Shown piece by piece: positions 44,497 through 53,523 of a DNA stretch of 64,000 bases. Each line of letters opens with the position of its first letter. Position 1 is the first letter of the stretch. The stretch is taken from positions 62,001-126,000 of IMG/VR virus record IMGVR_UViG_3300035698_010479; one strand, written 5' to 3'. The notes beneath the pieces were generated by a model. It had not been told where the DNA came from and searched no databases. It saw only the letters and a list, made by a program, of their open reading frames with translations. The translations under genes and the position numbers were made by a program.

Positions 44497-45246
44497 TTAT
44501 TTTAATATGTACCGCTTACTCTGCTCAATATCAAAGTAGTATCTATTACTGCCTTCTAAAAATTTATAAAAATTAAATATGCCTGAGTTACGGTCATAAA
44601 CCATTAGCCAAGCATAAACTGGCTTATCACCTCTAACAACCTCAGTTATCATTTTTTTAGCGTAAAGTAATTGACGAATAGTTGCATCTTTCTCATCTGA
44701 ACTTTTTGCTTCAACAACATGAATACCTCGTGCACCTTCGTAGCAACCATCTACCTCTATTTGAACTTTATCTACATCAAAGTCAGTTCTGCCTAATTTA
44801 AATTTAAAGGAGGCTCTTCTCTTATTACGTAACGTCAAAGATACCTTTTCACCAAAACAGTCATCTAATATGCTATTATAATGTGCTAAGTCCAAGGCCA
44901 TTGACTCAGTCTTAGATCCTTTAGAAAATCTATCTAATGTAAGTAAGCCCTCCATCTTTTTAATTGGGTACACCCGCATATCTGAAATATCTGGGATGGT
45001 TACAAACGGATTTTCCTTTGTAAATCTATATTTACCATTTTTAATTGCTAATAAAGATATATTACTTTCTCTCATAATTGGAGGTTGTTTTTTTCTGTTG
45101 TCCATTTTAGCAAGTAAACGTGACTCTTCTCCAGTTATAGCTTTTAGTGTATCGGCTGTTACATCCAAATAACCGAAATTATTAACATGATTAACAACAT
45201 CTAATTGTTCAAAAACACCATTCCATGCTTTTCTAAATTTGCTCAT
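44497..45246 (-). CDS. PD-(D/E)xK nuclease, type II restriction-enzyme-like
   Basis: QIEVDGCYEG...VVEAK...IRQLLY; probable start ATG 45246. Confidence 0.68.
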   Translation of the reverse strand: MSKFRKAWNGVFEQLDVVNHVNNFGYLDVTADTLKAITGEESRLLAKMDNRKKQPPIMRESNISLLAIKNGKYRFTKENPFVTIPDISDMRVYPIKKMEGLLTLDRFSKGSKTESMALDLAHYNSILDDCFGEKVSLTLRNKRRASFKFKLGRTDFDVDKVQIEVDGCYEGARGIHVVEAKSSDEKDATIRQLLYAKKMITEVVRGDKPVYAWLMVYDRNSGIFNFYKFLEGSNRYYFDIEQSKRYILK

Positions 45247-45260
45247 TTGTAATTCCCCTT

Positions 45261-46100
45261 TTATAAAAATAAACCTGCACAACTTCCGTAGTAGTTTCTT
45301 ATAAGAACCTCACCTTTATCTTTCCTAGACTTAGCAGATGCACCTACACTGTGATAAACAGATAAAGAATTAATTTCAAAGTCTTTAAATAAGTCTCTCG
45401 TCAATGGAGTGTCAGAATTTGATAATAAAAACTTGCCACCTTTAGCATCTACTAAATTACAGTAATCTACCAAGCGTTCCTGATCCTTCACATCGAAACC
45501 TTTGGATGAATAATTAGTGAAATTAGCTGTATCCGAATAAGGTATATATGGTGGATCTAGATAAACAAAAGTTCTATCGTTAACATAAGTTAAAGTATCG
45601 TAAAAATCATCATTTAATATAGTAATACGTCTTAAAATTTTAGATACATTAAGTAAATGTTCATGAGATGGCCACATAACCTTATCATATTTACCATAAG
45701 GTGTATTCATACTACCTTTAGAATTTACTCGCCAAATACCGTTAAAAGCTGTCTTGTTTAAGAATAAGAATCTAGATGCTCTCTCCAAGCAAGATCTATC
45801 ATCACGCCAGTCTATTTCTCTATCATCGCTTCGTATAAGGTAGTAAGATTCCTCAGTTAACTCTAGTTGACTAGTTAGCTGTAATAACTCTAAAGGATTA
45901 TCCCTCACTTGTTTATAAAAATTAATCAGTTCCCTGTTTGCATCATTTATTATACCGTTTGGCGGGTTTAAATAAAATAACAAAGCCCCGCCACCAATAA
46001 ACGGCTCTATGTATTGCTTGTAGTCTGTTGGGACATATAAAGATAAATTCTTTAATACTTTATGTTTACCTCCAATCCATTTTAACAAAGGCTTTGGCAT
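45261..46100 (-). CDS. dam: Dam-family (D12) DNA adenine methyltransferase
   Basis: LKWIGGK, EPFIGGG, FLNKTAFNG, DPPY, LSNS. Confidence 0.93.
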   Translation of the reverse strand: MPKPLLKWIGGKHKVLKNLSLYVPTDYKQYIEPFIGGGALLFYLNPPNGIINDANRELINFYKQVRDNPLELLQLTSQLELTEESYYLIRSDDREIDWRDDRSCLERASRFLFLNKTAFNGIWRVNSKGSMNTPYGKYDKVMWPSHEHLLNVSKILRRITILNDDFYDTLTYVNDRTFVYLDPPYIPYSDTANFTNYSSKGFDVKDQERLVDYCNLVDAKGGKFLLSNSDTPLTRDLFKDFEINSLSVYHSVGASAKSRKDKGEVLIRNYYGSCAGLFL

Positions 46101-46126
46101 TATAACTCCTAATTATACTAAAGTAG

Positions 46127-46157
46127 CTACCAGTACAGTTTATAGCTGTACTGGTAG
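46127..46157. terminator. terminator hairpin
   Basis: 12-bp inverted repeat CTACCAGTACAG / CTGTACTGGTAG. Confidence 0.7.
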
Positions 46158-46172
46158 TAGTTAATCAAATAA

Positions 46173-46352
46173 TTATTCTTTTACAGAAAGCTTTCTAAAT
46201 TCTTTTCCTAGTCTTTCAAGTGCTAATGTAGACTTCCTAAGTCGGGCAGCTGCGGAACTGTTACCCTTTTCAACCCACTTAATACTGTCATCAGTCATAG
46301 TGTCAATGATTTCTTGCATTTCAGATAATACTGTAATAGATGTTCTTTCCAT
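46173..46352 (-). CDS. histone H1-like Hc1 family protein (59 aa, not in ORF track)
   Basis: EKGNSSAAARLRKSTLALERLGKEFRKLSV; SD GAGG. Confidence 0.72.
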   Translation of the reverse strand: MERTSITVLSEMQEIIDTMTDDSIKWVEKGNSSAAARLRKSTLALERLGKEFRKLSVKE

Positions 46353-46420
46353 TTTTTTACCTCTTAATTTATTGTTTTATTTTTAAAGATTTATAAACTC
46401 TGTCTACTATAAAAAATGCT

Positions 46421-48148
46421 TTAACTACATCTCGAATAGCCACAGCCCTCGTTAACACACTTAATGCACCCCTCGGCATTTACCAGAGAAGGTTCTCCAC
46501 AAGTTGGGCACTTGTTATCATCCCCAACTAAAGCAAAAGCATCTACGTATTTACTTAAAACTCTAGAAATAGCTGTACTAAAATCAGAAATACTGCCATT
46601 TGTTTTTTTAAGTTGCTCTACTATATACTTTGGTAAAGCCCCATGTCTTAAAGCCAAGCTAAGTAATCTAGTCATACCCTTCTGCCCATCAGTCATTAAA
46701 ATAGCAGCAAGGTCTTTGTAAATAACTGGAGACCTTCGTATAACTACATCTAATTCGTATTTACCTTTACCTTGTTTTCTTATTATACCACTATTACAAG
46801 TTTTAGGCAAGTACAAATCTTCAGATGTGCCACAAAAAACCTCATAAGCTTTACCATCAAGTAGCCCAACAAGAACCGTCCACATTTCACCTTTTATAGA
46901 TGTATAAAAAATATCACAAGGTAACTCTTTAGGTCGCTTTGGTGCACAATTTGGAACTATACAAAAAGGTCTTGCCTCATCCTTACAGCCTGTTGCTGAC
47001 TTCTTCTCAAAGTTAGCCTCACTTGTTTTAGGATCTTCGAAAAGTAAAATACCCTCACGCGAACCATCGACATATACAGACACTGCTCTAACCCCGTGAT
47101 TATAAGCCTCCATATAGATAGTTTCTACATCCTTAACCGTAGCTGTAGCAGGCAAATTGTATGTACAACTAATAGCTGCATCTACCCACTTGTATACATT
47201 TCCCATTAATTTAATTTTCTGTAACGGGTCAATGTGATGAGCGGGTTTAAAAAAACCTTTTGGCAAATTTTTATTTATAATAGCTACCAAACCCAAACCT
47301 ATAGTTCCATCCTCATCCAAAACAGACCCAGGAAAAGCATCCAAGATCATATAATCACTACTACTTGGGTCGAGTTTACCAAGAACATATTGTTTTATTT
47401 TATCTGGTATAATAAAATAATGAGTATATTTTCCTTTGTCTATTGCTCTTGTCCTTCTCCAATAATACGGGCCTGGAAAAGGTTCTACACCAGATGAAAA
47501 ACAAGGTGTAGGAAAAGTACTAGACAATGACCCAGTAGGTGCTATAGACATATGGGCCATATTACGCATATGAGTTACTTTAGTATAGTCACCGCCGAAT
47601 AGCTCATCCACCACGTTCTTAAAATACGAAGAACTCATAAGCGCTTTAGGGCTACTTATCATCTCAAATGCTGGTGCATTACCTTTCTCTTTACCTAACT
47701 CTATTGACGCCTTAAATACCTCACATGAGTACCGCTTAAAAAATTCTCCTACATTCTTAATAGCATCATCAGAGTCATAGGGTAGGTCTTGCTTAAGTAA
47801 CCAACCATGTATGTTAGTAATACCAAGCCCCAGTTCTCTGGTCTGTTCCAAGATCCACGCTTGTTCTTTTAAGGGTGATAATTTATGGTATGCTTCATAA
47901 CTAACAACATTGTCCGATAGTCTTACAATATACGGAACAAGGAACGCTAGCTCCTGCGTATACTCTTCTATATCAATTGAAAACATTGCTTGGTTCGGTG
48001 AAAGTAAATTACATACACCATACGGTGGTAAACTTTTTTCCGAATTTTTTACTAACACACCTTCTACATAATAATTATGGTTATCTTGTACCTCAATATT
48101 ATATGTAGGCTTCTTTTCACTATTGTTTACTATACTAATTATTTTCAT
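46421..48148 (-). CDS. nrdJ: class II ribonucleotide reductase, C-terminal half, with N-terminal split-intein IntC
   Basis: IntC ...YNIEVQDNHNYYVEGVLVKN then SEKSLPPYGVCNL, LGITN, SIAPTGSLS, TSCPD-like region and terminal Zn ribbon (CPTCG...GCIKC). Confidence 0.9.
   Translation of the reverse strand: MKIISIVNNSEKKPTYNIEVQDNHNYYVEGVLVKNSEKSLPPYGVCNLLSPNQAMFSIDIEEYTQELAFLVPYIVRLSDNVVSYEAYHKLSPLKEQAWILEQTRELGLGITNIHGWLLKQDLPYDSDDAIKNVGEFFKRYSCEVFKASIELGKEKGNAPAFEMISSPKALMSSSYFKNVVDELFGGDYTKVTHMRNMAHMSIAPTGSLSSTFPTPCFSSGVEPFPGPYYWRRTRAIDKGKYTHYFIIPDKIKQYVLGKLDPSSSDYMILDAFPGSVLDEDGTIGLGLVAIINKNLPKGFFKPAHHIDPLQKIKLMGNVYKWVDAAISCTYNLPATATVKDVETIYMEAYNHGVRAVSVYVDGSREGILLFEDPKTSEANFEKKSATGCKDEARPFCIVPNCAPKRPKELPCDIFYTSIKGEMWTVLVGLLDGKAYEVFCGTSEDLYLPKTCNSGIIRKQGKGKYELDVVIRRSPVIYKDLAAILMTDGQKGMTRLLSLALRHGALPKYIVEQLKKTNGSISDFSTAISRVLSKYVDAFALVGDDNKCPTCGEPSLVNAEGCIKCVNEGCGYSRCS
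48044..48148 (-). mobile_element. split intein C-terminal fragment (35 aa)
   Basis: Intein block F/G ending in Asn, followed by Ser+1. Confidence 0.85.
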
Positions 48149-49163
48149 TATATAATCCTTCTATTTTTTGTATATACAACTCTATACTACCATAATATTT
48201 AATAATTGATTTATAACTAAATCTAGAATTAGGTCTACAATGCATTTCTTTATATAAAATTATAGTAGTCTCATCAAGTTTACCATATAATGCGTAAAGC
48301 TTTAAACCGTGTTTAATAAGTAAACTATACATTATTTTTTTCTTATCTTCTTCAGTATGCAGATGTCCGCTAGTACCATTTAATTTAGCTTTATAGTTAC
48401 ACCACGAACCCTTACAACTTGCTTTTTTGCAGTATTGCTTGTCTAATAAATCATATGTGTCTACAACATCTCCACAAAATATACATATATTTTGTTTCTT
48501 AACACCATATTTTTGTACACGTAAAATTTCCTGGTGTTTAATCTGTGCAGTACTTATACTAATTCTAAGTTCTGGCCTAGTTTTATGTGTAATTTGCATA
48601 GCAATACTACGCTTTTTACGAACCTCTGGTCTGCTTTGACACTCTAACATAAGCTTGGTGTGTGCTTCTAAACGCTCCTCGGAAAATTTAATACCGTATG
48701 ATGGGTTATTACTTCCAGACATATCATATGAATCAGACCGATCTATATACTCCAGCAAACAGCTTTTAAAGTCTTTGTGCTGTTTATAATAAGCTCTATT
48801 GTACGTTAAAGCGTTGTAGTTAATACCTAATTCCAAAAAATATTTTTTATACAGCGATAAATACGTAGTACATTCTTTAATAGAGTCTTTTATTTCAATA
48901 ATACTATTTAATATTGTATAAGTATTATCAATATAAATGAAAAAATCAGGTTTATAGGTACGATTATCAATAACATATACATGTTGTTCCATCAAGTAAT
49001 AAACATGTTGCTTATCTAAAAGTAAGCACTGTATTTTTTCTAACATTGACCTACAAAAAACACGTTTATTATCCCATGTGGTATGGTAACCGCAATAACC
49101 TCTTCCATTTTTAAAAGAACTTTTTTTTTGACTTCCTCCAACCGACATATTTACATCCTCCAT
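48135..49163 (-). CDS. free-standing homing-endonuclease-like protein (PD-(D/E)xK/TnsA-like domain plus NUMOD3-like motif)
   Basis: RSMLEK...YKPDF...IEIK; GSNNPSYGIKFSEE; located between the two nrdJ halves. Confidence 0.7.
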   Translation of the reverse strand: MEDVNMSVGGSQKKSSFKNGRGYCGYHTTWDNKRVFCRSMLEKIQCLLLDKQHVYYLMEQHVYVIDNRTYKPDFFIYIDNTYTILNSIIEIKDSIKECTTYLSLYKKYFLELGINYNALTYNRAYYKQHKDFKSCLLEYIDRSDSYDMSGSNNPSYGIKFSEERLEAHTKLMLECQSRPEVRKKRSIAMQITHKTRPELRISISTAQIKHQEILRVQKYGVKKQNICIFCGDVVDTYDLLDKQYCKKASCKGSWCNYKAKLNGTSGHLHTEEDKKKIMYSLLIKHGLKLYALYGKLDETTIILYKEMHCRPNSRFSYKSIIKYYGSIELYIQKIEGLYNENN

Positions 49164-49225
49164 AATTAATAAGTGTTATAGCATAGTAGAGTTAGTTAAA
49201 TATAGGGATGTAATTAATAGTATTA

Positions 49226-49534
49226 TTAAAGTTCCATCAAGTCATCTTCAAGAGTTAAATCTTTAGCCTGTACAATTCCTCTATTAGATGTGTAAAACTT
49301 ATGATCTGGTGTACATTCTATAGAGAGCCCACTACCTAGGTTTAAGGTTAGTGTTTTTACAGGTATACCCGCTTCACGAGCAAACACATCCACTATTGGC
49401 TTTAATTCATCAAGATTAGTACTTGTATTTCTGGATAAAGCCATGAAATCTTCCCCATCTAAAATGCGCTTTATAATATCCTTAATCAGTATATTGCCTT
49501 TATCTGTAAGTATATGATTTTCATCAGTAAAACA
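49226..49534 (-). mobile_element. split intein N-terminal fragment (102 aa)
   Basis: Block A CFTDENHILT, block B IECTPDHKFYT, ending AKDLTLEDDLMEL-stop. Confidence 0.88.
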
Positions 49535-50482
49535 GCAGGCGTTTGTAGAAATTATTTTAAATCTTGCATCACCAGTATCCAAATATATCTGATGAACCAT
49601 GGAACCTTCCCTTAGAAGGTCTATATATTGTACACCAGGTTCTGCGTGTTTAAACGCTTGTTCCGCTATTAAGTCGAATAACTCCGTAGCTTTTATTGTT
49701 TTAGATATACGCTTATATTTACTTCCTTCCTCAAACTCAAAAAATAATTCCCAACTAGCATCGGCCTTCACAGCTTCGATAAATTTATTAGAAACCTGCA
49801 CAGAAATATTGGCATTTTCCAAAACACCTTTTTCTGCTTTTGCTCGTACAAACTCATATATATCTGGGTGATGATCTTTTAAACTAACCAATATAGCAGG
49901 CTTTCTACCTTTCTGCCCCACCCATTCACCATTATCTACAAGTTTACATATCCATGGTACAGCACCTGTGGATTCTTCTGCAGCATTATTTACTGGAGCA
50001 CCTCTAGGGCGGAGTACTGAAGCATCAAAACCTAAACCCTGTCTAAAAGCTGCACACTTCATTATATCATAGTCACATTTAGAAATACTTTCCAAGCTAT
50101 CACCAGATAGAGGTAATGTGGTACAATTTAATAAGGATTTCAAGCTTGTAGCACCTACACCAGCAAGAACGCTTCCCCCTGGTCTAAACCAACCAAGCCA
50201 CATGAGTGCAAACCACCTATTACTGTATAGATCTTGCAGTTCTTTGGTTTTCTCCATAGTGGCTAACCCTGAAGATACACGCCAAAACACATCAGCAGGA
50301 GTTTCTATTTTGATATAAGGAGTGTCGGTGTCTGTTATTACTTTACCGTATTCATCCCATTTTGTACAATATTTAGTATCAAACATTTTATGAGCGTACT
50401 CATCTTCTGTAAAGTACTCTCTGCTGGAAATGTTCTTTACATTTTCGTACTTAATTAAATCTAACATCTCAATTGATAACAT
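49226..50482 (-). CDS. nrdJ: class II ribonucleotide reductase, N-terminal half, with C-terminal split-intein IntN
   Basis: FRPGGSVL, LLNC, RQGLGFDASVLRP, NANISV, AEPG, TNAC then intein CFT... Confidence 0.9.
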   Translation of the reverse strand: MLSIEMLDLIKYENVKNISSREYFTEDEYAHKMFDTKYCTKWDEYGKVITDTDTPYIKIETPADVFWRVSSGLATMEKTKELQDLYSNRWFALMWLGWFRPGGSVLAGVGATSLKSLLNCTTLPLSGDSLESISKCDYDIMKCAAFRQGLGFDASVLRPRGAPVNNAAEESTGAVPWICKLVDNGEWVGQKGRKPAILVSLKDHHPDIYEFVRAKAEKGVLENANISVQVSNKFIEAVKADASWELFFEFEEGSKYKRISKTIKATELFDLIAEQAFKHAEPGVQYIDLLREGSMVHQIYLDTGDARFKIISTNACCFTDENHILTDKGNILIKDIIKRILDGEDFMALSRNTSTNLDELKPIVDVFAREAGIPVKTLTLNLGSGLSIECTPDHKFYTSNRGIVQAKDLTLEDDLMEL

Positions 50483-50493
50483 AAGCTCCCCTA

Positions 50494-50958
50494 TTAATTT
50501 TTACCAGTAGAGCCAAATCCGCCCCTATTTTGATCACCTAAAGTCTCAACTATATTAAAACGCAGTTCTTTTTGATTAGCTATCAAACGGAATTGACAAA
50601 TTCTATCGTTAATCTCAATGACGGTGTCTCTCAAAGCTAACGCAGGTAGTTTGTAAATATCATCATCACCGCAGTAAGAATTATCTACAACTCCAGGACT
50701 ATTTGTTTGAATAATACCAAACTGTTTAAATGTGCTACCTCTTGGAGCAATTAAGACCTCATATCCTTCTGGTAAACGCATTGAAATACCTAAAGATATA
50801 AATTTAAAATCAAACATCTTCATCTCAACACGCTCGGCTGCTCTAAGGTCTATCCAATCTCCTATAGCAATTTTACCAATTTTATCAATTGACTCACTAT
50901 GGTATTTAATAGCAATGTCCAAACATTCATTACCAACACACCCACATAATTTACTCAT
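50494..50958 (-). CDS. dut: trimeric dUTPase
   Basis: IDLRAA, PRGST, GVVDNSYCG, RICQF, RGGFGSTG. Confidence 0.93.
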   Translation of the reverse strand: MSKLCGCVGNECLDIAIKYHSESIDKIGKIAIGDWIDLRAAERVEMKMFDFKFISLGISMRLPEGYEVLIAPRGSTFKQFGIIQTNSPGVVDNSYCGDDDIYKLPALALRDTVIEINDRICQFRLIANQKELRFNIVETLGDQNRGGFGSTGKN

Positions 50959-51199
50959 TATAATCTCCTTCTATACTTTCCACAAATAAAAGTTTCTCTC
51001 CAGCCTTACAACCAAGAATAACGCAAGCAGATTGATTTTCACTGCCTCTATCAAGATAAAATAAAGCGCACCAATTACCACATAATAAATTTTCGTTATT
51101 ATACGGGCATTTACTATTAAGAAAATAAGTAGCTTTTTTCTCCATAGATGTTAAAGCAGCAAGCTCCGTAGTAAATACTTTCATAAATACCTCCAACAT
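50951..51199 (-). CDS. hypothetical protein
   Basis: CPY...CGNWCALF...C pattern. Confidence 0.65.
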   Translation of the reverse strand: MLEVFMKVFTTELAALTSMEKKATYFLNSKCPYNNENLLCGNWCALFYLDRGSENQSACVILGCKAGEKLLFVESIEGDYNE

Positions 51200-51579
51200 T
51201 AAATTATTTTCTCTATAAAATTAGCATAAAATTGGCCACTTACCAGTTTTGAATTCTTAGGTACAAAACTAATAACACATAAAGGGTCATCTAGGTCTGT
51301 TGTTACAGATCTCTCAACAAATATAAAGCCTAAATGGATAACGAATTCTAAAGGTTCATCATAAAAATTTTTAATACTAATGTCAATGATTCTATCAAGA
51401 TATTCTAAGTGTACCCCGGTAAAAGCATAACCCTTTAATAAATTGATAGTCGTGATATCAGTAAAACCACATAGATGTGATTGATTATATAGTATTAACT
51501 CACCACCAATGTCGTCTATTATAACATCCTCATGATATTTAGTCAACATAATTTTTATATTATTTCCTACAGTAACCAT
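51199..51579 (-). CDS. hypothetical protein
   Basis: 126-aa ORF with SD AGGAG. Confidence 0.65.
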   Translation of the reverse strand: MVTVGNNIKIMLTKYHEDVIIDDIGGELILYNQSHLCGFTDITTINLLKGYAFTGVHLEYLDRIIDISIKNFYDEPLEFVIHLGFIFVERSVTTDLDDPLCVISFVPKNSKLVSGQFYANFIEKII

Positions 51580-51588
51580 ATAAATCTC

Positions 51589-53523
51589 CTAATCTTGTTT
51601 AGCACCACATTTGGCACATACCAATTTAGTACCATAATGTTCATCATGTACAAATTCCATAATATTATGTCCACATTTTTTACCTTCTACCTCTTCATGT
51701 TCGCACTCATGCTTGATCCAACAAGGTCCAATAACTGGCGCTGTGTGCATAGGCATAACTGGAAAATAATGATTAAACGCGTCATCTACAGAGCTTACAA
51801 CAATTTTAGCTACCTCATCAGCGTACTTAATAGGGGCTTCAACTACAATTTCATCGTGTACAGATAGTAGTAATCTTGCACCAACATTAAGTTGCTCTAA
51901 CCTATCCACACATAAAATCATAGCTAATTTTATAGTGTCACTATCAGATCCCTGAATCTTATGATTCTTTGCAGCTCTTTCGACACCACCTACTATCTTC
52001 TTTCTAGCTGGGTCACTCATAGCTGGTATATTATAGAAACGATGCCTACCAGTTACTGTAGTACTACTATGATTACGCACAGCCTCTTTAGCGGCTTTAG
52101 TAAGCCATGTATTTAACACACTATTAATTCTAAAGTAGGCATCAATCAGTGCTTGAGCTTTTCCTTTTTCTATTTTTAACCTTTTACCTAAACCTACTGC
52201 TGATATACCGTAAGCTAATCCAAACGAAATTGCTTTTGATGCTTTTCTCTGGTCTGGTGTGACTTTATCATAAGGTACTTTAAATATACGTGCAGCATTT
52301 ACTGTATGTAGATCCAAACCTTTTTCATAGGTATCTAAGAAGTTAGGCTCCCCTGACATAGCACCCATAATAACTAATTCAGCAGAGTTCTGGTCAACGG
52401 TTATTAAACACATACCTGCGTCTGCTATAAAGCAAGACCTAAACTTCTGCTTACCTGGTATATTTTGTAAATTAGGGTTATTAGAGGATAGTCTACCTGT
52501 AGAAACCATTTGCTTAAATTGGGTATGTAATCTACCAGTTTTTGGATGAATACGGTCTATTAAAGCTTCACCGTAGGTATTTACAAGCTTAGCATTCTTC
52601 CTATAAGCTAACAAATCATCTATAATTGCATTTCCAGAATATCTTTTTAAAGCCTCACTTGCAGTGGACTCTACTTTAATGCCAAGTTTGTTAAGTGCTG
52701 ATTTAAGTTGAGCGGGGCTAGCAATATTGACAGTAGGCACATCAAATAAGGATAACTGGTCTTGTGTAACTTGAAGACTATCTTCAATATTTCGTTTGAA
52801 TCCAGCCAACTCTGTCGCGAATTCATCCATCATAGTACGCCATTTAGTTACATCTAATTTTACACCATTTAATTCCATTTCTACCAGAGGTTTTATAAAA
52901 GCCATCTCAAGCGACAATGCTTCCTGTAAATTATATTTAGTTATTCTAGGTAACTGCATACTTCTTATTATGTCTAAAATACAAACATCTATCGCAGCAT
53001 AGGCTATCTGTTTATCAGTATAATCCTGGTCGTATATTTCAAAAGTACCTCTAGGCTCTTTATTCATCAACATCCCAAGATACTTTTCAACTAATTTAGC
53101 TAAACTAAAACCAGATTCTTGTACACCTAGGTACATGAGGATCTCTGCCAACATGGTATCATACACATTTTCTATATAAAAACCATACTGTACTTTTAGC
53201 ACCTTCATGTCATAATTAGCATTTTGTAGTATCTTAAGATGTCGTTTACTTGTTAAAATATCTTTAAATAAGCTACCATGAATATCTATTCCTGGCAAAT
53301 CACTACGCACATCAAAGACGTATGCCATATTAGGAATACCAATTTGAATAAGTGTAGTTCTACATTTATACGGGTCTAAGCTAGTGCCTTCTGTATCTAC
53401 TTCTAAAACCGGTTGAGTATCTAAAAAAGCAAGTACTTCTTTAGCCCTATCAGCTCTTTTTATATATTCATAATTTGGAACAGGTAACTCAGGTAAGTCT
53501 ACAAATGCTGCTAAATTCGACAT
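51589..53523 (-). CDS. polA: family A DNA polymerase (3'-5' exonuclease plus polymerase; no 5'-3' exonuclease)
   Basis: VDTEG, NANYD, YAAID; TGRLSSNNPNLQNIP, motif A DQNSAEL, motif B RKASKAISFGLAYG, motif C VHDE. Confidence 0.95.
   Translation of the reverse strand: MSNLAAFVDLPELPVPNYEYIKRADRAKEVLAFLDTQPVLEVDTEGTSLDPYKCRTTLIQIGIPNMAYVFDVRSDLPGIDIHGSLFKDILTSKRHLKILQNANYDMKVLKVQYGFYIENVYDTMLAEILMYLGVQESGFSLAKLVEKYLGMLMNKEPRGTFEIYDQDYTDKQIAYAAIDVCILDIIRSMQLPRITKYNLQEALSLEMAFIKPLVEMELNGVKLDVTKWRTMMDEFATELAGFKRNIEDSLQVTQDQLSLFDVPTVNIASPAQLKSALNKLGIKVESTASEALKRYSGNAIIDDLLAYRKNAKLVNTYGEALIDRIHPKTGRLHTQFKQMVSTGRLSSNNPNLQNIPGKQKFRSCFIADAGMCLITVDQNSAELVIMGAMSGEPNFLDTYEKGLDLHTVNAARIFKVPYDKVTPDQRKASKAISFGLAYGISAVGLGKRLKIEKGKAQALIDAYFRINSVLNTWLTKAAKEAVRNHSSTTVTGRHRFYNIPAMSDPARKKIVGGVERAAKNHKIQGSDSDTIKLAMILCVDRLEQLNVGARLLLSVHDEIVVEAPIKYADEVAKIVVSSVDDAFNHYFPVMPMHTAPVIGPCWIKHECEHEEVEGKKCGHNIMEFVHDEHYGTKLVCAKCGAKQD

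Follow-up and report, generated by a model that had tools for sequence, protein, structure and literature searches.

The nrdJ gene in the 64,000-nucleotide stretch of phage DNA analysed here (the window) is a fractured class II RNR gene that carries a naturally split intein after its thiyl-radical cysteine (NAC/SE), an assignment supported by comparison with uninterrupted homologues. We put the probability at roughly 0.85 that the interruption is a selfish mini-intein cassette, broken by an endonuclease gene, whose products are trans-spliced to give whole NrdJ. The locus is termed a fractured gene because the endonuclease gene lies between the intein halves. It belongs to a phage record of ~228 kb from salt-lake metagenomes, with a completeness of 86%. 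In the open reading frame list, three ORFs on the minus strand correspond to the nrdJ N-half with IntN, a nuclease gene, and IntC with the nrdJ C-half. The features are as follows.

49226-50482, minus strand: nrdJ N-half plus 102-aa IntN, 418 aa, C-terminal end KIISTNAC/CFTDENH...LEDDLMEL followed by a stop
49535-50482, minus strand: nrdJ N-extein, residues 1-316, whose last residue is the thiyl-radical Cys (STNAC)
49229-49534, minus strand: IntN, 102 aa, with Cys1, Thr75-Pro-Asp-His78 and Leu102; matches TIGR01445 and 8ubs_A
49151-49213, minus strand: predicted RNA hairpin within a 62-nt spacer, in which UUACAUCCCUAUA pairs with UAUGGAGGAUGUAA
49156-49161, minus strand: nuclease Shine-Dalgarno sequence GGAGGA, inside the hairpin
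48135-49148, minus strand: free-standing putative homing endonuclease, 337 aa when counted from the ATG that follows GGAGGA
48789-49106, minus strand: nuclease core of PD-(D/E)xK type, approximately residues 20-125 of the 342-aa ORF, with E59, P72-D73 and E90-x-K92
48675-48719, minus strand: NUMOD3-like DNA-binding motif, residues 149-163, SG.NNP.YG (PF07460)
48414-48485, minus strand: four-Cys cluster, with C227, C230, C245 and C250 invariant in the family alignment
48156-48161, minus strand: Shine-Dalgarno-like GAAGGA, 7 nt ahead of the C-half ATG and within the 3' end of the endonuclease ORF
46421-48148, minus strand: IntC plus nrdJ C-half, 575 aa, start MKIISIV...EGVLVKN/SEKSLPPYGVC
48044-48148, minus strand: IntC, 35 aa, with Met1, Asn17 (F:4), His24 (F:13), penultimate Lys34 and terminal Asn35; matches TIGR01443
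46421-48043, minus strand: nrdJ C-extein, 540 aa plus stop, first residues Ser+1-Glu (SEKSLPPYG)

The limits of the insert (48044-49534, exactly 1491 nt) follow from close relatives in which uninterrupted nrdJ reads STNAC/SEKSLPPYG, so that the intein boundaries are based on colinear intein-less homologues and not on motif guesses. These intact homologues (L002 and L005) are 855-856 aa long, and their genomic context is syntenic, with dUTPase, pol A and clamp-loader genes upstream of nrdJ. They also agree with the sequence-only reading of this DNA, which had trans-splicing rebuild the NxCxE active-site motif (NACSE). The same reading had the N-half end as STNAC/CFTDENH...EDDLMEL with a 102-aa IntN, as confirmed by the ORF list and the alignment to intein-less homologues, and had the C-half begin with MKIISIV and a 35-aa IntC followed by SEKSLPPYGVC, as confirmed by the ORF list and TIGR01443.

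Positions 3-213 of the Ribonuc_red_lgC profile are matched by the N-half and positions 224-523 by the C-half, and the C-extein includes a TSCPD-like region and a C-terminal Cys cluster. We assign the gene to class II on profile evidence: TIGR02504 (NrdJ_Z) is the top family for the exteins, yet scores under its cut-off, and no RNR small subunit (PF00268) was found in the 228-kb record.

Both intein halves match established profiles. TIGR01445 (intein_Nterm) covers residues 317-398 of the N-half with 34.1 bits against a cut-off of 24.5, and TIGR01443 (intein_Cterm) covers residues 15-36 of the C-half with 22.4 against 15.6; the Pfam Intein_splicing model (PF14890) scored 25.3, which is under its gathering cut-off of 35.8. 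IntN begins at N-half residue 317 (Cys1, invariant in 18 aligned sequences), and a double stop, TAATAA, lies right behind it at 49223-49228. Cys74, Asp77, His78, Asn35 and Ser+1 are likewise invariant in the intein alignments. Block B:7 holds Thr in 16 of 18 sequences and Ser in the others, and block F:13 is His24 (NHNYY), with Arg in three relatives. In a predicted complex of IntN and IntC the docking score is 0.75, a level that 58 of 80 solved complexes and 2 of 110 mismatched pairs attain, and the best of three controls scored 0.00; the two halves are therefore predicted to dock.

Two assisting positions deviate from the usual residues. Block F:4 is an assisting position and not a nucleophile. 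Its commonest residue is Asp (PMC4031507), which is absent here; Asn17 takes its place, aligns with Asp23 of NrdJ-1 and is invariant in 10 clade members. The sequence-only reading had also reported Lys for His at the penultimate position (G:6). This Lys is present (Lys34), but it is no oddity, being invariant in the same number of clade members and shared by L030 and L031, which are more distant. Judged from these alignments, it is a conserved state of the whole clade and not a defect of the window copy. Since Asn17 and Lys34 are fixed in the intein clade, we presume that they are functional substitutes and not lesions. According to preprint 10.64898/2026.03.03.709324, the NrdJ-1 mutations His39Ala (the penultimate position) and Tyr89Ala each make splicing slower and leave the branched intermediate trapped. 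At these two positions the window has Lys and Ile; together with Asn at F:4, these residues suggest that splicing of the window intein may be slow or may depend on its native exteins.

The sequence-only reading passed over the 337/342-aa ORF between the halves, arguably the more unusual part of the locus. The mechanical ORF starts at 49163 and would encode 342 aa; the starts of homologues favour the second ATG (337 aa). The gene is read in a frame other than that of nrdJ and runs 14 nt into the start of the C-half, an overlap common to the window and three relatives (L023, L024 and L025). No curated family in Pfam, PHROG or NCBIfam names this ORF, and searches of these collections gave no match for a nuclease of GIY-YIG or Vsr-like type. 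The core residues E59, P72-D73 and E90 do not vary among 11 sequences, K92 is almost invariant, and the top Foldseek matches in the PDB are TnsA structures (1f1z_A and 1t0f_B, E 2e-3 and 3e-3, prob 1.0). All of the top matches are PD-(D/E)xK nucleases, but their scores are weak (TM-scores 0.24-0.33 for TnsA), and the nuclease model has a pTM of only 0.46. Atlas neighbours carry Tn7_TnsA-like_N together with NUMOD3. Against the window nuclease PF07460 scores weakly (E 0.059), but of the 11 family members 7 match this profile, the best at 7e-6, and G150, N153, P154 and G157 of the motif are invariant. The four-Cys cluster, which in profile searches weakly resembles FCS/eL24-type zinc motifs, is probably a zinc ribbon. 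We therefore regard the product as a putative TnsA-like PD-(D/E)xK nuclease.

The predicted pairing of UUACAUCCCUAUA with UAUGGAGGAUGUAA covers the GGAGGA of the nuclease gene. In the window it is too weak to be significant (z -1.4), but it reaches significance in four relatives, with z-scores of -3.2, -4.5, -6.3 and -2.7, and at two base pairs both partners have changed among three sequences.

Relatives with the same order of N-half, endonuclease and C-half (L023, L024 and L025) come from independent assemblies of other samples. Farther examples of this layout are L030, L031 and L038, along with the fragments L027-L029. Contiguous mini-inteins of the same clade occupy the same nrdJ site (L006:6088-6513, P0114 and P0012) and carry the same Asn (F:4) and Lys (G:6). 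In the tree of C-exteins the window is sister to the intein-less L002 (100/99), and the split-intein label requires at least 5 changes. The cassette is thus patchily distributed on the host-gene tree as reconstructed, which we count in favour of mobility; the junction is not flanked by any clear co-conversion tract. The empty-site allele, the conserved layout, purifying selection, the conserved catalytic residues and the predicted docking bear out the proposal of a naturally split intein at the RNR active site.

These observations are consistent with the following mechanism, of which splicing, DNA cleavage and its target, and regulation are steps that we infer. A selfish cassette of 1491 nt occupies nrdJ directly 3' of the thiyl-radical Cys codon. 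This cassette is a mini-intein that is itself broken between blocks B and F, the usual position, by an endonuclease gene that supplies its own stop and start signals. The expected products are N-extein with IntN (418 aa), the endonuclease (~337 aa) and IntC with C-extein (575 aa). IntN and IntC would come together as a single HINT domain, and trans-splicing would follow the canonical class 1 route, in which Cys1 forms a thioester, Ser+1 attacks it to give a branched ester, Asn35 cyclises, and an O-to-N shift yields an 856-aa NrdJ with its N-A-C-S-E active-site loop restored. In co-infecting phages the endonuclease would cut nrdJ alleles that lack the cassette or hold a mini-intein without an endonuclease gene, whereupon the cassette would be copied in. 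The hairpin over the ribosome-binding site probably holds down endonuclease translation, and the C-half would be translated from the ribosome-binding site in the 3' end of the endonuclease ORF.

The two halves might instead form an active reductase without splicing, the intein halves being docking domains only. This arrangement would resemble NrdA of phage Aeh1, a non-spliced fragmented RNR (PMC3045599) that a mobile endonuclease gene has split and that is reassembled non-covalently, and it would agree with the non-canonical residues Asn17 and Lys34 at positions that assist splicing. We consider it very unlikely, given that the residues of the splicing chemistry (Cys1, His78, Asn35 and Ser+1) are invariant across diverged relatives, that B:7 is always Thr or Ser, and that the contiguous versions, which need splicing to free the enzyme, have the same Asn and Lys. 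Moreover, a retained domain of 137 aa would occupy the catalytic centre, because the break is inside the N-x-C-x-E active-site loop. It is hardly credible that nrdJ is decaying, with a dead endonuclease and an intein remnant in a phage that uses host reductases, even though selfish cassettes often decay and the genome record is incomplete. Values of dN/dS are well below 1 for all five segments (IntN 0.19-0.20, IntC ~0.035, endonuclease 0.10-0.11, exteins 0.04-0.11), at dS of at least 0.5 in all comparisons and above 1 in most, and are rough because synonymous sites are near saturation. All cassette and extein parts are under purifying selection, and frameshifts and internal stops are absent from four independent copies.

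An artefact of assembly or sequencing, hiding a contiguous intein with an internal endonuclease domain, would fit the fact that the N-half and C-half share one frame, the insert being a multiple of three in length. The chance of this is close to nil. The endonuclease is in another frame, and the extein frame has 25 stops across it; the double stop, the 62-nt spacer and two ribosome-binding sites are all in place; and the layout is identical in other samples. In addition, contigs from four salt-lake metagenome runs, which may include the source sample of the window itself, are 100% identical to it over the covered parts, among them the stretch from the stop of IntN through the spacer to the start of the nuclease gene, as well as the two extein/intein junctions. 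The middle ORF could also be a nuclease domesticated for some other phage function and hitch-hiking here, and not a homing endonuclease. It has no curated family name, and TnsA-like cores are found in many phage proteins of unknown role. However, family members with 29-38% identity are found in the same place, between the intein halves of fractured nrdJ genes at two insertion sites, the order of core then NUMOD3 mirrors that of phage GIY-YIG and HNH homing enzymes (PMC3239194), and the cassette is patchy on the host-gene tree; domestication is therefore unlikely. A trans-spliced nrdJ broken by a homing endonuclease is thus the reading that we retain.

A broader proposal is more tentative. The inteins with Asn (F:4) and Lys (G:6) could constitute a distinct, widespread RNR-intein clade in which Lys, in place of the penultimate His, resolves the branched intermediate, and the middle gene, with its order of TnsA-like PD-(D/E)xK core, NUMOD3, four-Cys cluster, could represent an undescribed modular homing-endonuclease lineage specialised on the RNR thiyl-radical site. 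If the Lys-for-His clade is real, its inteins could be orthogonal to NrdJ-1.

The NrdJ-1 split intein is widely used, and the sequence-only reading rightly named it as a known case of a fractured phage gene. The fractured layout was described in 2009 by Dassa et al. (PMC2677866), including NrdJ-1, NrdJ-2 and their insertion point. Hence the claim that the window intein is new holds in that it is uncharacterised, but not as to kind, and unannotated relatives at 76-90% identity are present in public assemblies. NrdJ-1, NrdJ-2 and the window intein are all inserted in class II RNRs after the thiyl-radical Cys, at NPC/SEI (the native NrdJ-1 junction; preprint 10.64898/2026.03.03.709324) or NAC/SEK. 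The halves of NrdJ-1 are 105 and 40 aa, compared with 102 and 35 aa, and are split at a similar position; both systems use Ser as the +1 nucleophile and have a free-standing nuclease gene between their halves. The window IntN matches the NrdJ-1 structure (8ubs_A, PDB 8UBS) with E 4.7e-9, although only 29 of 92 aligned positions are identical (~30%), in agreement with the divergence from known split inteins that had been proposed, and short of the close similarity expected among allelic split inteins. IntC alone as the query did not retrieve NrdJ-1; a contiguous relative aligns over the entire NrdJ-1. Where NrdJ-1 has Asp at F:4 and a penultimate His, the window has Asn and Lys, and the "accelerator" Tyr89 of NrdJ-1 is replaced by Ile, whereas its Tyr83 is kept as Tyr81. 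The cyanobacterial DnaE inteins (Ssp, Npu) also occur in nature as two halves, divided at the same structural position, and are active without a penultimate His, having Ala or Ser there (PMC5874633; reference 87 in PMC4031507). Unlike the window intein, they reside in another host gene, their halves are encoded far apart with no endonuclease gene between them, and they have Cys at +1 and a small penultimate residue in place of Ser and Lys.

Phage enzymes of the EDxHD (I-Bth0305I) and GIY-YIG types are, like the window nuclease, free-standing and bipartite, with a nuclease core and NUMOD-type motifs; they too occur between the halves of split inteins and have hairpins in the 5' leader (PMC2677866, PMC3239194). 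The fractured genes of PMC2677866 have GIY-YIG or Vsr-like nucleases; by its motifs, the window nuclease is neither, having a classical E...PD...ExK signature and no visible EDxHD or GIY-YIG motif. We considered and rejected an EDxHD (Vsr-like) identity, because the motif is absent, I-Bth0305I ranked only 17 in the fold search (E 0.12), and the domain order is reversed: that family has an N-terminal NUMOD region and a C-terminal Vsr-like core with the EDxHD motif (PMC3239194), whereas the window has the nuclease first and NUMOD3 after. The best structural match of the core is TnsA, the endonuclease subunit of the Tn7 transposase (PDB 1F1Z), which shares the Y-x-PDF...E-x-K pattern, though the similarity is weak (17% identity, TM ~0.3). 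The window nuclease lacks the C-terminal domain and transposon context of TnsA, and has NUMOD3 and the four-Cys cluster fused instead. As a whole, judged by alignment, the window intein is a diverged, uncharacterised relative of NrdJ-1.

Three consecutive minus-strand ORFs fill positions 46421-50482 in the ORF list of the window, where the sequence-only reading proposed an nrdJ gene fractured by a split intein. In fractured genes, found mainly in phages, a conserved enzyme gene is broken by a split intein and a free-standing endonuclease gene lies between the halves (Dassa et al. 2009, PMC2677866). The proposal is supported: the strings it quoted are correct, intein profiles match both halves, and relatives carry empty-site alleles. 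Its lengths for the intein halves, 102 amino acids (IntN) and 35 amino acids (IntC), are also right. The reading did not mention ORF 2. The three ORFs are as follows.

49226-50482, minus strand: ORF 1, nrdJ N-half with the intein N-terminal splicing region (418 aa; first 213 positions of the ribonucleotide-reductase barrel profile)
48135-49163, minus strand: ORF 2, middle gene, between the nrdJ halves and in a different reading frame
46421-48148, minus strand: ORF 3, intein C-terminal splicing region with the nrdJ C-half (575 aa; barrel profile positions 224-523)

After the barrel, ORF 3 continues into a TSCPD-like region and then a C-terminal cysteine cluster. In the related contigs L002-L005, nrdJ is a single ORF of 855-856 amino acids in the same gene neighborhood. 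Relatives without the intein align uninterrupted across the junction (...RFKIISTNAC/SEKSLPPYGVCNLL...), and the insertion in the window is therefore exactly 1491 nucleotides (48044-49534). The insertion point lies between the codon for the thiyl-radical Cys and the Ser-Glu next to this Cys in the N-x-C-x-E loop.

An artefactual split is excluded, because the nrdJ halves share one frame, the endonuclease gene occupies a different one, and 25 extein-frame stops occur across that gene. The window sequence recurs in low-depth contigs from several salt-lake metagenome runs, which are 100% identical over the IntN stop, the spacer, the nuclease start and both extein/intein junctions. In our scan of viral contigs, close relatives turned up whose match ends at residue 316. 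A group I intron or other RNA element was rejected for positions 45500-51500, where Rfam has no match at E <= 0.1. The exteins are best described as a class II reductase, with NrdJ_Z as the best family, although on an intact relative this model scores 328.6 bits, below its cut-off of 399.95. A class I reductase was rejected, because NrdE_NrdA scores only 176.7 bits on that relative and a search of the 228-kb virus record (estimated completeness 86%) found no small-subunit gene.

Flanking genes form a phage replication and nucleotide module, with a dUTPase, a family A DNA polymerase, a clamp-loader-like ATPase, an Hc1-like protein and a Dam-type methyltransferase. The Hc1-like protein (59 aa, 46173-46352) matches the chlamydial histone H1-like Hc1 family (E 4e-13), adjoins nrdJ downstream and is kept in L023-L025, contigs from other samples. 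At 44497-46100, the gene for a DUF6996/DUF6997 protein (261 aa) overlaps a D12-class adenine methyltransferase gene (279 aa) at the end of the latter. A syntenic relative encodes, in this place, an N4/N6 methyltransferase together with an ICEA-like protein; the place is possibly a variable restriction-modification-like spot. The 4-kb region gave 0 matches in a megablast search of INPHARED phages, hence no close cultured relative.

The intein halves carry conserved residues, some of them unusual. Among 18 IntN sequences, Cys1, Cys74, Asp77 and His78 are invariant, and position 75 is Thr or Ser; Asn35 and Ser+1 are invariant among 10 IntC sequences. The same 10 sequences also share Asn17 (block F:4) and the penultimate Lys34, a residue that the sequence-only reading had correctly pointed out. 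Both depart from the textbook pattern, Asp being the commonest residue at F:4 (PMC4031507). Lys is the penultimate residue in L030 and L031 too, which are more distant fractured loci. Contiguous inteins must splice to give a working reductase, and the contiguous members share the Asn and the Lys, which argues that these residues are compatible with splicing. In NrdJ-1, a characterised split intein, the mutations His39Ala and Tyr89Ala make splicing slower, and the branched intermediate becomes trapped (preprint 10.64898/2026.03.03.709324). The window intein has Lys and Ile at these two positions and may splice more slowly than NrdJ-1, or Lys may take over the task of the penultimate His. In docking, the predicted IntN-IntC complex of the window scored 0.75, compared with 0.00 for the best of three controls; the docking mark is passed by 58 of 80 solved complexes and 2 of 110 mismatched pairs, and a pass can mirror likeness to solved intein complexes.

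The middle gene encodes a putative endonuclease. Its mechanical ORF start is 49163, but the protein is probably 337 amino acids long, because GGAGGA lies 7 nucleotides ahead of the second ATG (49148) and homologues start there. No curated family matched this gene, and Pfam gave only scattered sub-threshold matches across the family (RE_endonuc, DUF1064, TnsA-like, VRR_NUC). An exhaustive search recovered 95 cluster representatives at E <= 0.001, of which 53 reach E <= 1e-10; most are ~330 amino acids long. In the family alignment, E59, P72-D73 and E90 of an N-terminal core are invariant and K92 is nearly so. The family also has four conserved cysteines and an SG.NNP.YG motif; in 7 of 11 members this motif gives a match to NUMOD3. 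The family profile found nothing significant among PDB sequences. The predicted model (pLDDT 75; core 85-95) retrieved TnsA as its top fold match (E 2e-3, probability 1.0, TM ~0.3); further matches were other PD-(D/E)xK nucleases, with I-Bth0305I only at rank 17. Atlas neighbours have Tn7_TnsA-like_N together with NUMOD3.

Homologues of this endonuclease (P0143, P0144, P0148, P0150 and an ORF of contig L038; 30-38% identity) lie between intein halves of nrdJ genes fractured at the same site. In contigs L036 and L037, the break in nrdJ is at NP^CGE, the neighbouring site, and the ORFs between the halves have the nuclease core too (E 2e-7 and 1e-12). At these loci (L036:5321-6061 and L037:5302-6594; STNP^CGE) the intein ends in His-Asn or Ser-Asn, and the TnsA-like core stands behind differing N-terminal regions. 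The L038 locus (L038:4001-7962; GCA_905333785.1) has in-frame TGA codons where database proteins show Trp (MAKVK*IKK versus MAKVKWIKK), and its translation does not give the query protein; the sequence suggests that this relative decodes TGA as Trp.

The 62-nucleotide spacer can be folded such that UUACAUCCCUAUA pairs with UAUGGAGGAUGUAA, which is predicted to mask the endonuclease Shine-Dalgarno sequence. In the window this hairpin does not stand out from shuffled sequences (z -1.4); its equivalents in related loci are significant (L023, z -3.2; L024, z -4.5; L027, z -6.3; L028, z -2.7), and a comparison of three sequences shows two pairs with changes in both partners. The 2009 study of fractured genes (PMC2677866) also noted 5'-leader hairpins for endonuclease genes. 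The C-half ATG has its own GAAGGA 7 nucleotides upstream, within the end of the endonuclease ORF.

L023, L024 and L025 carry the same three genes (419, 336 and 574 aa), and in them, too, the end of the endonuclease gene and the start of the C-half overlap by 14 nucleotides. In pairwise comparisons, dN/dS comes to 0.19-0.20 (IntN), ~0.035 (IntC), 0.10-0.11 (endonuclease) and 0.04-0.11 (exteins), rough values given that synonymous divergence is near saturation (at least 0.5 in all comparisons and above 1 in most). Every part of the fractured locus is clearly under constraint.

Contiguous mini-inteins of the same clade occupy the same site in L006 (6088-6513, 142 aa) and in the relatives P0114 and P0012; in P0117 and P0130 an intein is located at NA^C, next to that site. 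In a C-extein tree, the window gene and the intein-less L002 are sisters (support 100/99). The window gene falls among intein-less alleles, and the remaining fractured copies are placed elsewhere. For the split-intein state, the well-supported branches require five or more gains or losses. This patchy distribution is what a mobile cassette would produce. Sliding-window nucleotide identity between intein-plus and intein-less relatives (70-85% identity) gave no clear signal of a co-conversion tract around the junction, and no other inteins or extra endonuclease copies were found in the 228-kb record.

Some relatives carry further inteins. The nrdJ ORF of L006 (4285-8130, 1281 aa) has two: one in the N-terminal region, containing LAGLIDADG and placed at SLAN^CTT, and, at NAC^SE, the contiguous mini-intein that ends in Lys-Asn. 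The family A DNA polymerase of L023 (673-3921, 1082 aa) includes a LAGLIDADG-domain intein, and its window orthologue (51589-53523, 644 aa) has none. In the short contig L027 (2059 nucleotides; 1-831 and 1953-2057), the N-part ends ...HVFWNAGLSVCN/C/CFTEDTEV..., that is, an NA^C-site intein, the thiyl-radical Cys alone, and IntN of an NAC^SE-site split intein. This single Cys would have a double role, as +1 nucleophile for one of the inteins and as -1 residue for the second.

The locus and its relatives show all stages from empty site through contiguous mini-intein to endonuclease-broken mini-intein, together with a neighbouring-site intein. These stages correspond to the order of events proposed for split-intein origin.

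The split inteins gp41-1, NrdJ-1 and IMPDH-1, from fractured phage genes, are among the fastest protein-ligation tools, and orthogonal sets are in demand (PMC7090010). IntN of the window retrieves NrdJ-1 (8ubs_A, E 4.7e-9), with 29 of 92 aligned columns identical; the contiguous intein of L006 can be aligned with NrdJ-1 over its full length, and IntC alone found weak PDB matches to other inteins only, NrdJ-1 being absent. Both systems pair an acidic IntN (in the window 18 Asp/Glu versus 11 Lys/Arg) with a basic IntC (residues 1-16, 3 versus 1), the polarity reported for NrdJ-1 (PMC2677866). Tyr83 of NrdJ-1 corresponds to Tyr81, whereas Asp23, His39 and Tyr89 are replaced by Asn17, Lys34 and Ile. 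The native NrdJ-1 junction is NPC/SEI (10.64898/2026.03.03.709324) and that of the window NAC/SEK; with Cys/Ser common to both, the window locus is an NrdJ-1-type allele in the intein sense, but a distant one. Natural DnaE split inteins also lack a penultimate His, having Ala or Ser there (PMC5874633), in contrast to the Lys of the window. As a natural NrdJ-1 relative differing at three positions that tune the rate-limiting step, the window pair is a ready-made comparison for catalysis without a penultimate His.

GIY-YIG and Vsr-like/EDxHD are the two endonuclease types reported in fractured genes, and the middle gene is neither; EDxHD enzymes have the opposite domain order (PMC3239194). Our literature search, whose coverage is incomplete, found no account, for inteins or for fractured genes, of a homing endonuclease that is TnsA-like. 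If active, this family would extend the known range of gene-fracturing enzymes by a modular PD-(D/E)xK type. The sequence-only reading had called the intein new and divergent, and it is indeed uncharacterised and far from identical to NrdJ-1, but its kind was already known (Dassa et al. 2009). The evidence supports an uncharacterised, diverged member of that kind, which does not overturn current understanding; what goes beyond the ordinary is the conserved Asn/Lys pair replacing Asp/His, together with the TnsA-like modular endonuclease.
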